Assembly: GCF_000143415.4 (NCBI RefSeq)
Contig: NW_003314334.1
Location: forward strand, 906,822-970,821
DNA from: Selaginella moellendorffii
Taxonomy: Eukaryota > Plantae > Lycopodiophyta
DNA: 64,000 nt
Direction of reading: 5' to 3'
This document shows, piece by piece, positions 6,501 through 12,600 of the stretch (positions are counted from its first letter, which is position 1; every line of letters starts with the position of its first letter). The notes beneath the pieces are model-generated. The model saw only the letters and a program-made list of their open reading frames with translations, ran no database searches and was not told where the DNA came from. A program made the translations under genes and the position numbers.

Positions 6501-6971
6501 CTGGTAACTCCTCCGGAGAGGAAGCCAAAGGAGACGAGCAGGAGTAGCAGCGGCAAGAGATCGAGCGCTCGCAGCAAGTCGATGAGGAAGCTCAGCTCTG
6601 GAAGATCGTCGCAGAAGAAGCAGCTCAAGGTCTCGGCGGATGGAGAGGTGGTGACCAAGGAGAACGTCTCGGACAGGGAGCAGCGTCTCAACGGGCCGGG
6701 GCTGTTCAAGATTTCTTCGCTGGGCGACCACGATGGATTCGAGCAGGAGGCGGTAGAGCAGCAGTCGAGAGGCCAGGCACAGATCGTTGCGAGCGCAAAG
6801 GACGATGAGCAGTCGAGAGGCCAGGCACAGATCGTTGCGAGCGCAAAGGACGATGAGCAGTTGAGAGGCCAGGCACAGATCTTTGCGAGCGCAAAGGATT
6901 GTCTCGAAGGCTTGAACGATGAACAACTAGAGGAGCTGCAAGCTTCTTTGATGATCGAGAGAGCAGAGTGA
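3533..6971 (+). CDS. Alpha/beta-hydrolase lipase (AB-hydrolase-associated lipase family), multi-exon
   Basis: N-terminus MIESVVEGALGVAKE|SIKTFT. Motifs YPYECLRVTTEDGYVL, LQHGMFDS, nucleophile elbow SHSLGG, catalytic D (GKKD) and H (YAHLDF). Many short GT-AG introns. Confidence 0.9.
6757..6898 (+). repeat. 3 x 48-bp coding tandem repeat in the lipase C-terminus
   Basis: EQSRGQAQIVASAKDD repeated three times, nearly identical at the DNA level. Confidence 0.95.
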
Positions 6972-7186
6972 GTGATTCTTTTGTTCTTCTAGATTTTGTG
7001 TGACTTCCAAAGGAGCGATGGAATTAATTGTATTTATCATGGTCTAGTATTGACGTGCGCGGTAAATTCAAATTCAAATTTTCGAATTCGAATTTTTAGG
7101 GTTCTTGGAGAAGGCGGGTTGACGCGAGGAGAAATGGCAATTGGAGGTTTCGGCGCGCTGTAGCTGGATTGGATTGATCGATCGGC

Positions 7187-9629
7187 ATGGCTCCGAAGAA
7201 GGGGAAGAAGCAGCACGGCAAGGGAAAGCCGGGGGTGCTCAAAGCGAAGGGGAAAGAGACGAAGAAGAAGAAGAAGGACAAGAAATCGGGAGCGAAGAAA
7301 GATGGGAAGAAGAGCAAACTCGCGTCGGGGCTGGGGAATCTGCTCAAGGCCGGCGGCAAGAAGATGCAAGCAAAGATGAAATCGCAGGGCGCCAAGCTGG
7401 AGGAGAAGATGAAGAAGAAGGGGGTGGAGATGCAGCAGAAGATGAAAGCCAAGGGGAACGAGCTGCGCAAGAAGATGAAGGACAAGGTCCACGAGAAGTC
7501 GGAGGAGATGAAGAAGAAGATGAAAGACACAAGAGCGGGGATGAAGAAGAAGATGAGAGACAAGTCTCACGAGCTCAAGGCCAAGATGGAGAAAGGCGGG
7601 AGGGAGATGAAAGCCAAGATGAAGGCCAAAGGGAAGGAGCTCCAGGCCGACGCGAAGAAGAAGATGCGAGAGACTGGCAAGAGGATGAAAGAAACTGGGG
7701 AGAAGATGAAGCACTCTGGAGAGGAGCTGGAGAAAGAGATGGCGAACCTGGGCGGAGAGGCGGCGTCCGGGATCACGAACAAGCTGGTAGCCTGGCGCAA
7801 AACTTTCGAGGACAAAGGCTGGGCGATCGGCAAAGTCCAGGACGATTGGTTCTCGCTCATGCTGCTGGGACTCAACGCCTTTAGTGCGGGTTTGGCGATC
7901 CCAGTTCTCGGAGTCTCCATCTCCCTAGCTTCCGCGTTTAAAAGAGAGTGCCTGGCCTTCCTCCTCACTCCGGCCGTGACCATCGGCTTCCTCTTCAGCC
8001 TGCTGCTACTCGGGATCTCCCTGGCTGGATTCGCTGGGGTGTGGTGGAACCGTCTCGGCATCGTCAAGATCCACTTCTTCCTCACGGCCGTGCTGGTTGT
8101 CATGCTGCTGTGCTTCACCCTGTTCGGCTTCGCCGTGACTTATCGAGGTGGTGGGAAGAAGCTGCCAGGCATAGCCTTCCGGCGGTACCTCTTCACGGAC
8201 TACTCCAAGTGGCTCCAGAGGAAGCTGGTCGGGAATGGATCGCACTGGCAGGACATCCGGTCGTGCGTCGCCAAAGGGAGCTTCTGTCACAACTGGAACC
8301 TTGGCTCGGCCGAGGAGGTGTACTCCGCAAAGCTGTCCTCCACACAGGTCCCCTCTCCATCTTCTCTTTCGTTGTTGAATCGATCGTTGCTCTTCTCACG
8401 TAAACGTTGCTGCTCTTCTCACGTAAACTTTGTGCTGTTCGCAGTCTGGATGCTGCGCTCCACCATTTCCCTGTGGCTTTGCTTACCAAGGCGGGACCAA
8501 CTGGCGGCTTCCCAGCACCCCGGACGCGGACGCGGACTGCTCGGTGTGGAACGCCAACGAGCTCTGCCTCGACTGCGACTCTTGCAAGGCCGGCATCTTG
8601 CAGAACGTCAAGAGCAAGTGGTACAAGGCCTCGGTTGTCAACATCGTGGTGATTGCTGCGCTGCTTGCCATACTGTACCGGACGTGGTTCGTGATGCGCG
8701 TCAGCGGGAGGTGGGAGAGCGTCGCCCAGGAGGTAAAGCAGGCCGTCAAGCCCAAGGAGGAGGAACAGGAGCACGTCGAGCCGTCGGCGGTGATTGATAT
8801 CATCCTTGAAGGCGAGGAGCACGACGAAACCGCCAAGAAGAGAGCCGCCGCTCTGGTGGAAGAGGACGAAGACACGCTGTTCCCGTCGTGGCTGGAGGAA
8901 GACACACCTGCGGATTCCATACCGAAGAGTTCGTCAGCAACAAGCTCTCAAGCGAGTTCCACCAGCAAGAGAAGCAAGAAAGGCAAAGGGAAGAAGTCAC
9001 CACCATCCGAGACGTCGTCCGACGCTGGATCAAAGAAGTCTCGCAAGCAGAAAGGCAAAGGCAAAGCAACAACGGAGGACGAACAAGCGTCTGCTCAAGA
9101 TGACGATTCCTGGGCAAGTCCTCGGCAGCAGGCAGACTCAGCAGTGGGAACTTTCCCGCAGGGATTTGTAGCTCAGAATCCACTGGCTGCAATGTCTCCC
9201 TGGATGCAAAGTCCACAAGCAGGATACATGCAGAGCGGGGCTCTCTACAACGATCCAAACTACATGCAAGCGGCATACCTTCAAGGCCAGATTCCTGGAA
9301 ACTACACGTTCTACCAGACAGATCCATATGGACAAATGGCAGGGAACTTATACCAAGGATATCAAGATCCTCAGATGCAAATGTATATGCAAGATCCACA
9401 GATGCAACAGATGTACATGCAAGATCCGATGCAGGAGATGTATATGCAAGATCCTCAGATGCAGCAGATGTATATGCAAGACCCTCAGATGCAAAGTTAT
9501 GGTTTTCATCAGGACCCTTACGTGCAAGACCCCAACCAAGGATACCAGTACCAAGCTTACGATCCAAGCCAGGCTTACATGCAAGATCCAAACCAGGCAT
9601 ATCAAGAATGGCAGAATCCATCATATTGA
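7187..9629 (+). CDS. Tetraspanin with very long N- and C-terminal extensions (~781 aa); exons 7187-8347 and 8445-9629
   Basis: Four TM segments, EC1 Cys (RECLAFL), EC2 YSKWLQ...W..IRSC, Q|SGCCAPPFPCG and DCSVW...LCLDCDSCKAG. The single intron falls before SGCC, as in plant tetraspanins. Confidence 0.9.
9360..9600 (+). repeat. Coding ~30-bp tandem repeats (YMQDPQMQQM) in the tetraspanin tail
   Basis: Repeated atgcaagatcc units; about 8 QDP motifs. Confidence 0.9.
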
Positions 9630-9652
9630 CTAGAACGGTCTTACGTACCAGG

Positions 9653-12600
9653 TTAGATTTTTCCGGTGTACTTGAAGTTTTTCTCGTAGTCTTTCCTAAT
9701 CATCGCAAGATTGCTTCTCAGAGGTCCTTCTGCTAGATCAACAGTGAGAATCTCATAACACGAATGCAAGGCGTAACCTCCAAGTGCGGCGTGGAGTTGT
9801 TGTAGATCTTGAGACGAGCTCAAGAGTGCGTACACGCCCGGTCGAAGCTCCTTGTCCACCTCCCTGAAAGGAAGTTTTGGTTTACGATACGAAGGGAAAA
9901 GAAAGGGACTTTACCTGTCCAGGCCGGCTTCAAAAGGTCCAGCTCCTGACAAAACGGACAGATAATCGGAGAGGACGTTTATGCAGTACCTTCCCAAGGT
10001 CTCTTTCTGTTCTCCGAGCTGGATCGACGGGAAACAATGTTTCAGGCAAAAAAACATGTAAAACACGGCAAAGAAAAGTTACCTCTTCATATATTCGCCG
10101 AAGCCAACGGGCACACTGCATAGCAGTAACCGTAGTCATTGTACAAAGCTTTGATGAACTTTCCAAACAGTGTAACAGCACACGAAGAGATTCTCCCAGA
10201 AGTGCAATAGCGCGGCCGCTCTCTCTGTGAGAGGACAAAAGAGAGCGCTTTAGATGGATGCTCAAAATGATCAAATATGTTACCTTTTCCGATGTTTTAA
10301 GACTGTATATAGCAGCTTGCACGATGCAATATAAAAATGCAAGACGACCTCAGCGTCCACATTGCCATCCTCAATCTTGAAGCGGGGATTCCTGTGCTTG
10401 GTGTAGCTTGGGAGCTTGAACTGATATACTGGCTTTAAAATACCCACGGGACTGTGCAGAGCAAGAGCAACGTGAGTGGCTTTCATACAGAAAATGACTT
10501 CGCGGGAAGCGATCCTTGTTATGATGTCCAGGCTCTGGAGAAGGACGGAGGAGGAGGCGACTGTAGCTGGCCTCTCTTCCTGCCGTTTTTTCTTATAAAA
10601 CACAGCTGGTCCTTGAAGATGCGTGATTAGATTCACTAGCTCGGCGATGAATCTCGGTGAGTACTTTGCAAGGACTTTTAAACGTCGTGGACCTGTAAAA
10701 CAAAAAGACGATCATAGAGGTCACGATGGAAAAATAAAACAGCAACTTACCTGAAACAGCGTCCAGAGCGACTGCGAGGCACTCCACACAAGCCGCAGTT
10801 ACAACTCCAACTCTTCCATCGTCAGAGTCACCGAGTCTCAAAGCGGAGCTGAACTTGGAAACGTCAGAGCTTCCACAAAGTGCCTTCTGTATAGTCTGAA
10901 ACGCAAGAAGAAGCTGCGGCACTGGTGCGAACTTGATGAGCGCACAAAACGAATCCCTGATCGCAGCACCCAAGTCTCCGTAGAAACGGCCAAAGTCGAC
11001 ATGCAGCTCTCTGCCGGCTCTTATTTCAGACGACTGCAGCCATATAACAGCTCCCAGGAGATCAATATGCAGCTTCAAAAGTCTCAGGTACTCTGCTCGA
11101 GCTACCGGAGGTTGAAGCGAAGGTAGAACAAGCCCGAGTGACTCCATGCACTTGACTGCTCCGAAAATCCAGAAGAAACACGTACGCTTGGCGGGCGCAG
11201 CGTGATACATAAGGGACGTTGCCTCGGTGAGAAGTGAATAGACAACTTCCAGCACTGCACTGACTGTCGAAGGAGCCACCGTCTTACCGATAGAAGACGC
11301 TTTCAAAGCATACGGCGAAAAGTGTAGACTTCTCAGCTTCACCAAGGCAGCCATGGCCATCAAGAGCTCCCCAACGATTTCCGATCGTTCTCGTTGCAAG
11401 CCGCTGTCGAACAGCCAGCTTAGAGCAGCTTTCTGCGATTCGTCCAGTGGATGTAGCTGAGATGTCTCGTCCGCTCGAACGTTCACTTCCTCCATGTCAA
11501 TGTCTTGAGCCGGTTCTACTTTTCGATCCTCGTCGTCGCTCGAAGTTTCAGACTTTCCTTCGTCTTCTTGCTCTTCTTTTTCACTGTCGCTTTCATCGGT
11601 GCTCTCATCGTCCTCCTGGTCCTCCAGTAGTGTCTCAACTTTCAGGGCCTTCACATCGATGTTTTTCGAGTCCAGAAACACGTCTAGAATACTGCTCTGC
11701 CGTGACTCTGTACCCCGGGCTTCTGCAATACGTCCCAGTAGAATGGTAACAACCTTTTGCTCAATACTTCTGAGAGACGACACCCAAGGAATCGTTGTCA
11801 GCCATCGTAACTCTCTGCTTTTGTCTTCTTGACATTTTCTGTCCAGGAGCCCGAGAGTTTCAGCAGCTGTCCACAAAATACTCCTTGCGAAAGATATCGA
11901 TCCAAGAAAGCTGTAGCTTTGCAGCTCATTGTCATCTGCGTCCCAGGCACTGTCGGCTTGCTGTATACATTTGAACAGGAACTTAGTGTCGTCGTCCCTG
12001 TCAACTGATTCCGCCCGTGCTTCGGACCGCTTGACAAGGAGGCAGCTCGATTCCAACGCGAAGATCTGGTTCAAAATATGCTGGATGTATGACTGCGTAC
12101 TCTTGACAGCGGAAGCCAGCGAGCCAGCGATGGATTCAGCCACAAAAGCACTCCTTTCTTTCAGCTTCATTGCGCAATCTGAGGCCATGTTGATGGATCG
12201 ATATAGCCAGCTGAAAAGGTCCATATCGAATCCCGGAACGTCGCTACCGATCTGTTTGCTGCGGGTAATCGCGAATGCTTTTGTTGTCTGTCTGCAGACG
12301 GCAAAAAGTTCAAATATCTTGACACCTGAGATTTCTGATCTGTTCTTGATAATTGCAGCCAACATACTTAAGGCGAGTCTAAGAAAAAAAAAACATGTTC
12401 TTATAAGCAAAACAAAGAAAAAATGCGGTACCTTTCGACATAGCAAACCGAGAAAATGCACTGCATTGTATCCAGCTCCTTCTTTTGTCCCCAAGGAAAG
12501 GAAGCAATAAGCTGGAAAAGACCAATGCATGTTTCTAACGTTGAATCCGGCAACAGCTGGATGTTCAAGGTTGACGACTCAAAGCCTGTAAAAGAAGGCT

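Follow-up and report, generated by a model that had tools for sequence, protein, structure and literature searches.

A probable long-tailed tetraspanin gene in Selaginella moellendorffii with a predicted 11-residue-repeat amphipathic helix before its membrane core

The organisation of membranes by tetraspanins is generally attributed to the transmembrane core and the extracellular loop, the cytosolic ends being tiny. The tetraspanin gene at positions 7187–9629 of a 64,000-nucleotide (nt) stretch of the Selaginella moellendorffii genome (contig NW_003314334.1, positions 906,822–970,821 of the forward strand; the window in the following) raises the question whether a member of this family carries long cytosolic tails at both ends. 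A first-pass annotation of the window had claimed a complete plant tetraspanin core fused in frame, within the same two exons, to a basic N-terminal tail (N-tail) of about 220 residues and a low-complexity C-terminal tail (C-tail) of about 310 residues. The coordinates, the Pfam match and the splice all supported this description; the tails measured approximately 216 residues before the first transmembrane segment (TM1), with a net charge of +45, and 308 residues in an open frame after the fourth (TM4). With somewhat more confidence than doubt, we take the locus to be an intact, lineage-restricted S. moellendorffii gene, both cytosolic ends of which have been enlarged by the duplication of short in-frame repeats. 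Of the two additions, the N-tail is the well-founded and interesting one; doubt attaches to the distal C-tail, and any biological role is inferred.

The gene model (Table 1) starts with an ATG that has G at both −3 and +4, and an in-frame TGA at 7175 lies four codons upstream of it. The tails and the core occupy the same two exons and, as had been claimed, no intron separates them, nor does a stop. The gene matches scaffold GL377638.1 exactly (record positions 914008–916450). No second copy of its four protein parts was detected with tblastn in the window. A scan for bacterial-type promoters and terminators found nothing and is not relevant to a plant gene. Together the exons encode 781 residues; all searches and folds were run on the separate exon sequences or on the public protein P0001 (EFJ12558.1, "hypothetical protein SELMODRAFT_123817, partial", 239 amino acids (aa), scaffold GL377638.1).

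The core is a bona fide four-pass plant tetraspanin. When the core part of exon 1 was searched with HMMER against 1.84 billion representative sequences, exon 1 residues 225–387 were 100% identical to P0001, which crosses the intron at exactly the placed junction (STQ/SGCC). P0001 scored 61.9 bits with Pfam Tetraspanin (PF00335; cut-off 32.1), and the single exons scored 32.9 bits (exon 1, residues 225–368) and 18.6 bits (exon 2, exon-2 residues 5–78). By hydropathy, exon 1 has three membrane segments and exon 2 has one, and the AlphaFold model of P0001, built with 48 relatives, had four long membrane helices at a predicted local distance difference test score (pLDDT) of 90.7. In a Foldseek search with the core structure the first matches were CD81, PRPH2-ROM1, uroplakins, CD9, Tspan15 and CD53, with weak E-values (0.07–1.4). 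The VIA-align Z scores were 12.9 for uroplakin, 11.9 for CD81 and 11.2 for PRPH2; these are inflated by helical bundles, and the fold likeness supports membership in the family but is not decisive alone. Plant tetraspanins have been delimited by nine Cys in the large loop and one in the small loop, the signature SGCC(K/R)PP and, as a screening criterion, short tails (PMC4675852). The large loop of the Selaginella protein holds 2 + 7 = nine Cys and the conserved Cys255 lies at the end of the small loop. The signature reads SGCCAPP, with Ala in place of Lys/Arg, and the tails are far from short, although shortness is a descriptive trait and not required by the fold.

The HMMER search produced 291 representatives at E ≤ 0.001, and 149 of the best 150 were measured. 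Among the 291, the gene itself was the only one more than 40% identical to the core. The best identities of the others were 38–40%, and the median identity was 31% to 47 relatives, as compared to 34% among those relatives. Judged by its sequence, the core looks like an ordinary member of the family but has no close partner. In the 149 measured representatives the stretch before TM1 had a median length of 5 residues and the longest protein was 595 aa; none of them had tails like those of the Selaginella tetraspanin. Ten relatives with N-terminal extensions were looked up as possible precedents and rejected, four being Logan open reading frame (ORF) calls, two ENA/JGI metagenome entries and the rest automated models. 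One of these automated models, P0143 of Mikania micrantha (KAD3641299.1), has a tetraspanin core fused to two LIM zinc-binding domains and is probably a merged prediction. A word search with residues 1–387 of the 536-aa read-through ORF 7187–8797 scored nothing, being swamped by Lys-rich words, and with residues 200–387 of the same ORF nothing was found among proteins of 295–938 aa, the only lengths covered.

The N-tail carries the coding signature of the genome and is, by its codon usage, well supported as coding. Its GC content at third codon positions (GC3) was 0.83 (0.85 when the Lys and Met codons were left out), as compared to 0.79–0.80 in the core and 0.39–0.50 in noncoding sequence. 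A codon model trained on the neighbouring genes gave +0.50 bit per codon in frame versus −0.40 and +0.09 in the other frames. The synonymous bias was 0.19 in the N-tail and 0.18 in the core, and between −0.12 and −0.05 in intergenic and intron sequence. The 33/66-nt DNA repeats underlying the N-tail have decayed to a match of approximately 75% while the register of the protein has been kept, which points to long-standing translation.

The composition of the N-tail is dominated by Lys (31%), followed by Gly (12%), Glu (10%) and Met (8%). AlphaFold gave residues 1–48 no secondary structure (pLDDT 45–53) and folded residues 49–209, from the single sequence, into one unbroken helix, with a pLDDT of 83–93 over approximately residues 70–170. 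The predicted helix stops about eight residues short of TM1. Its repeats are of the type Lys-Met-Lys-x-Lys-Gly-x-Glu-Leu/Met-x-x, and the Met, hydrophobic and Lys positions are all periodic at 11 residues, with Met spacings of 4, 7 and 11 and a Met autocorrelation of 0.48, 0.48 and 0.36 at lags 11, 22 and 33. Over a stretch of 131 residues the hydrophobic moment was 0.303 at 98.2 degrees per residue versus 0.078 ± 0.041 in shuffled sequences (z 5.5; 0/2000), and it was coherent only at this angle, which is that of the 11/3 geometry, being gone at 100 degrees. The repeat structure exceeds chance. In the columns of the register, one holds Met in 7/8 repeats and its flanking columns hold Lys in 8/8 and 7/8, with acidic residues opposite. 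Periodicity, moment at 98.2 degrees and computed helical propensity are all those of an 11-mer (3-11) amphipathic helix, and the sequence shows the class-A amphipathic pattern of the apolipoprotein, alpha-synuclein and perilipin type. In Pfam, apolipoproteins were the one family that the N-tail resembled, at a score below threshold, and in the sequence search of the PDB, apolipoproteins A-IV, A-I and E were the sole matches (best apoA-IV, E 2e-4). This likeness is probably convergence, not membership. When the N-tail was compared with Pfam at E up to 10, neither LEA_4 nor Dehydrin was listed, and the ESM Atlas gave no usable match for the N-tail or the C-tail.

The C-tail consists of an acidic part, a part rich in Ser and Lys, and a part rich in Gln, Tyr, Met, Pro and Asp. 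The acidic part appears clearly coding from its codon usage (GC3 0.76, codon score +0.47, synonymous bias 0.14), and a C-tail of at least approximately 70 residues is real. The coding signal of the Ser/Lys-rich part is ambiguous, and the last part had noncoding-like values (GC3 0.48, synonymous bias about 0). The frame of the last part had 0 stops, versus a mean of 8 in dinucleotide shuffles (0/3000 open). Against its coding nature, the two other forward frames also hold only one stop each, which indicates that the low-complexity composition itself lowers the number of stops. Because nothing in the sequence closes the frame earlier, the distal 230 residues are probably translated, but young or weakly constrained. 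No relative of the C-tail was found by a word search (ORF 8430–9629, residues 95–399) among proteins of 219–698 aa, the range to which it was restricted. The C-tail had no Pfam match, and its PDB sequence search returned chance-level rows only.

The allele of the second haplotype, on GL377604.1 (SELMODRAFT_109706), has kept the start, the splice sites, the stop and the whole open frame. Over the 2443 nt the haplotypes differ by 31 exon substitutions, one intron substitution and one indel. This sole indel is 6 nt long, in frame, and situated within a run of Lys codons. The 215-nt intergenic stretch directly upstream has four frame-breaking indels between the haplotypes, and others are present in the nearby noncoding DNA. 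The ratios of nonsynonymous to synonymous substitution rates (dN/dS; Nei-Gojobori, small counts) were 0.21 in the core and 0.18 in the proximal C-tail.

Table 1. Features of the tetraspanin gene, in positions of the window.
Feature	Position	Strand	Description
Possible upstream ORF	7134-7163	+	9 codons, ATG to TAG; read from sequence
Exon 1	7187-8347	+	387 codons: N-tail, TM1-TM3, first half of large extracellular loop
N-tail part 1	7187-7330	+	residues 1-48; K/G-rich, polybasic, predicted disordered
N-tail part 2	7331-7813	+	residues 49-209; ~12 degenerate 11-residue repeats, predicted continuous amphipathic 11/3 helix
TM1	7835-7936	+	residues 217-250; hydropathy, AlphaFold helices
TM2	7943-8047	+	residues 253-287; hydropathy, AlphaFold
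TM3	8063-8146	+	residues 293-320; hydropathy, AlphaFold
Large extracellular loop, first half	8147-8347	+	2 Cys
Intron	8348-8444	+	GT..AG, 97 nt; conserved place of the family, directly before SGCC
Exon 2	8445-9629	+	394 codons and TGA (9627-9629)
Large extracellular loop, second half	8445-8615	+	GCCAPP motif, 7 Cys; Pfam match
TM4	8616-8702	+	exon-2 residues 58-86; hydropathy, AlphaFold helix in P0001
C-tail part 1	8703-8924	+	acidic; E 23%, net charge -16
C-tail part 2	8925-9089	+	S 27%, K 24%
C-tail part 3	9090-9629	+	179 residues and stop; Q 22, Y 12, M 11, P 10, D 8%
30-nt (10-codon) tandem array	9359-9494	+	4.8 copies, 84% match; Met/Gln/Tyr/Asp/Pro decapeptides

From the topology of the family and the positive-inside rule we infer that both tails are cytosolic. 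The ends would have been lengthened by duplication of in-frame repeats, with units of 33/66 nt at the 5' end and 30 nt at the 3' end. Folded as an 11/3 helix, the N-tail would present a narrow Met/Leu/Gly face between the invariant lysines, with the acidic residues on the far side, and would rest flat against the anionic leaflet on the cytosolic side, next to its own anchor in the membrane, adding a lipid-binding footprint of approximately 24 nm. Such a tethered helix could gather acidic lipids, could detect curvature or induce it, or could make a tetraspanin microdomain more stable. The last part of the C-tail, if translated, would be a young, weakly constrained disordered region with possible multivalent self-association. 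The first-pass annotation had proposed a scaffold coupling lipid binding to condensate formation. The lipid-binding half has gained ground, as the periodicity, the moment, the AlphaFold helix and the apolipoprotein matches give the N-tail the anatomy of a lipid-surface-binding amphipathic helix. What suggests condensates is the composition of the C-tail by itself, the distal part of which (8925–9626) lacks the codon bias of the host. A still bolder version, in which the tethered Lys/Met helix and the Met/Tyr/Gln tail make the protein an organiser of membrane domains or curvature whose lipid binding and self-association are switched by Met oxidation, is very improbable; if true, it would be a redox-sensitive membrane scaffold without a described counterpart in plants or animals. 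If a natural tetraspanin does carry a lipid-surface helix of 160 residues, one polypeptide would combine two ways of shaping membranes, the tetraspanin web and the 11-mer amphipathic helix, that are otherwise investigated in different proteins, and the N-tail can be deleted, which would allow a direct test of how a tethered helix affects microdomain size, lipid content and curvature.

A number of observations weigh against an intact gene with enlarged ends. P0001, a JGI model, is a partial core starting at Met225, and no transcript, peptide or full-length public model of the tetraspanin was found in sequence and literature searches; the literature on the two locus tags was silent about it, as were the supplements of the Selaginella expression-atlas preprint. 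Between the stop of the upstream lipase gene and the tetraspanin ATG there are no more than 215 nt, the 9-codon upstream ORF (which shares its frame with the end of ORF 6996–7163) terminates 24 nt before this ATG, and the stop of the C-tail lies 24 nt from that of a convergent Urb2 gene. The codon use of the distal C-tail is noncoding-like throughout (GC3 0.48–0.55, synonymous bias about 0), dN/dS was 0.94 in the N-tail (five changes only) and 0.56 in the distal C-tail, and the N-tail reached 38.9 bits with Pfam Apolipoprotein (PF01442), where the cut-off is 90. No tailed orthologue was found by which the tails could be shown to be conserved. Part of this would suit a tetraspanin of normal size, starting at the internal Met185 (7739) or Met225 (7859) and having its distal C-tail spliced out or present only as an accidental open frame, with the upstream ORF in the tight intergenic gap shifting ribosomes to later AUGs, 18 in-frame Met codons available in the N-tail, and a distal C-tail without codon bias in which also the other frames are nearly free of stops. 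This explanation is unlikely, as the Met225 start comes from a record flagged "partial" that ends in the middle of TM4, and which is therefore to be read as a homology fragment and not as a measured start. P0001 is the only public model, spans less than one third of the open frame and leaves the tails unannotated; as a sequence fragment it confirms the splice and is silent on either tail. Moreover, the GC3 and synonymous bias of the N-tail equal those of the core in this frame only, the acidic stretch of 70 residues that follows TM4 is clearly coding, no indel between the haplotypes breaks the frame of either tail, and before 9627 there is no in-frame stop, nor is there space for another 3' exon before the convergent Urb2 gene. 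The upstream ORF would only matter if transcription begins further upstream; together with the tight spacing it does not contradict the gene model, but makes transcript mapping decisive. If the tails were untranslated, the locus would be an annotation curiosity only.

The tails could also be translated and yet be neutral products of repeat slippage, tolerated as disordered baggage by an ordinary tetraspanin, and for this we see a small but real chance. Both tails contain tandem DNA repeats with units that are multiples of 3 nt, no homologue has them, their dN/dS values exceed that of the core, and a comparable in-frame repeat, its copy number varying between the haplotypes, is present in the neighbouring lipase gene. 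The dN/dS values fit a constrained core with looser tails, although counts of this size prove little about the tails. Against neutrality, the DNA repeats of the N-tail have decayed to about 75% identity, whereas the protein has kept its 11-residue register, its Met face and the Lys on either side of that face over approximately 130 residues, which argues for selection on the pattern of the helix and not on the DNA. Decidedly improbable is also a real N-tail with another task, as a hendecad (11/3) coiled coil for oligomerisation, a binder of RNA or other polyanions, or, with the C-tail, a Met-based Cu(I)- or oxidant-sensing surface. Hydrophobic residues spaced by 4, 7 and 11 suit hendecad coiled coils as well, the charge of +45 would suit a polyanion binder, and both tails contain 8–11% Met, which forms Met-x-Met runs in the repeats of the C-tail; but two helices of +45 would repel each other, the narrow hydrophobic face without bulky residues resembles that of lipid-surface helices (PMC5889406), Pfam matched no family that binds nucleic acids or metals, and a helix tethered about eight residues from TM1 is held at the membrane surface. 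We therefore retain the intact gene with enlarged ends and a membrane-facing N-tail as the preferred reading.

The surroundings of the gene are tightly packed. The upstream gene encodes an Abhydro_lipase protein, the C-terminal extension of which contains a 48-nt in-frame tandem repeat (6760–6898; 2.9 copies, 97% match) that is one unit shorter in the other haplotype (48-nt deletion, 6815–6862). At 6968 a perfect GTGAGT donor overlaps the lipase stop (6969–6971), and 7099 is the end of a T-rich acceptor; if these two sites were spliced, 20 further codons ending at 7163 would take the place of the stop. In the other haplotype there is a 4-nt insertion at 6965, with a model of 802 aa versus 818 aa, and where the lipase gene really ends at its 3' side is uncertain. 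The N-tail as a fusion with the lipase was considered and ruled out, as the frame ending at 7163 differs from that of 7187 and the in-frame TGA at 7175 intervenes. On the other side, the stops of the tetraspanin and of the minus-strand Urb2-domain gene (1838 aa model) converge within 9629–9653, so that the 3' untranslated regions of the two genes must overlap if both models are right. Further to the right, between 40,000 and 64,000, the GC content falls from approximately 0.45–0.57 to 0.30–0.40 with one GC-rich island at 44–46 kb, which suggests a repeat- or transposon-rich block adjoining the gene-dense left part of the window.

Compared to the canonical plant tetraspanins (Arabidopsis TET1-17, rice OsTET1-15), the Selaginella gene shares the four helices, the small and large loops, the nine loop Cys, the SGCC..PP signature and the two exons with the intron before SGCC. 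The canonical proteins have ends of a few to a few tens of residues, as against approximately 216 and 308, and GCCK/RP where the Selaginella gene has GCCAPP. The juxtamembrane Cys after TM4, present in the comparators P0027 and P0091, is not found in the Selaginella tetraspanin.

A check for other long-tailed tetraspanins yielded one uncertain bryophyte precedent, an isoform of MpTET3b of Marchantia polymorpha (BFI17854.1, 1117 aa; BFI17855.1, 595 aa), and no N-terminal repeat helix. MpTET3b is likewise a non-seed-plant tetraspanin with large low-complexity additions, and the annotated 1117-aa isoform has a cytosolic tail of approximately 540 residues after TM4. Unlike the Selaginella gene it has no N-tail, and its main addition is a Pro-rich repeat in the extracellular loop, an insert of approximately 330 residues that all its isoforms carry. 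The tail is unrelated in sequence and arises by absorbing a formerly separate gene (P0164): in the pair P0163/P0164 (Mp6g10130/Mp_6g10120) the 1117-aa isoform takes in a whole low-complexity protein of 508 aa. The core of MpTET3b is 31% identical to the Selaginella core (rank 91). MpTET3b reportedly could not be cloned, possibly because it is expressed only in sexual organs (preprint 10.64898/2026.08.17.745377), and by analogy this suggestion is the only hint of the possible specialisation for gametes, spores or desiccation that had been proposed for the Selaginella tetraspanin.

Among animal tetraspanins, a functional precedent is peripherin-2/RDS, the disordered cytosolic tail of which is reported to contain an inducible amphipathic helix that generates membrane curvature (Khattree 2013 and Milstein 2017, as listed in PMC7140794). 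The tetraspanin core and a cytosolic amphipathic helix are shared, and PRPH2 was among the best structural matches to the core. The peripherin-2 helix is short, single and C-terminal, whereas the Selaginella helix is approximately 160 residues long, repetitive and N-terminal, and the sequence relationship is limited to the family fold. The helix itself has its closest parallels in the 11-mer proteins. A 3-11 helix of 11-mer repeats, with a narrow hydrophobic face without bulky residues, has been described in apolipoproteins, alpha-synuclein and perilipins (PMC5889406). With apolipoproteins, alpha-synuclein, the "giant" helix of Plin4, CCT-alpha and group-3 LEA proteins the N-tail shares the tandem 11-residue repeats, the 3-11 geometry, a narrow face of weak hydrophobicity, and interfacial Lys. 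The other 11-mer proteins are soluble and their binding is reversible, whereas the predicted Selaginella helix would be covalently tethered to a four-pass membrane protein, and it differs from them also by its Met-dominated hydrophobic face and its far higher charge.

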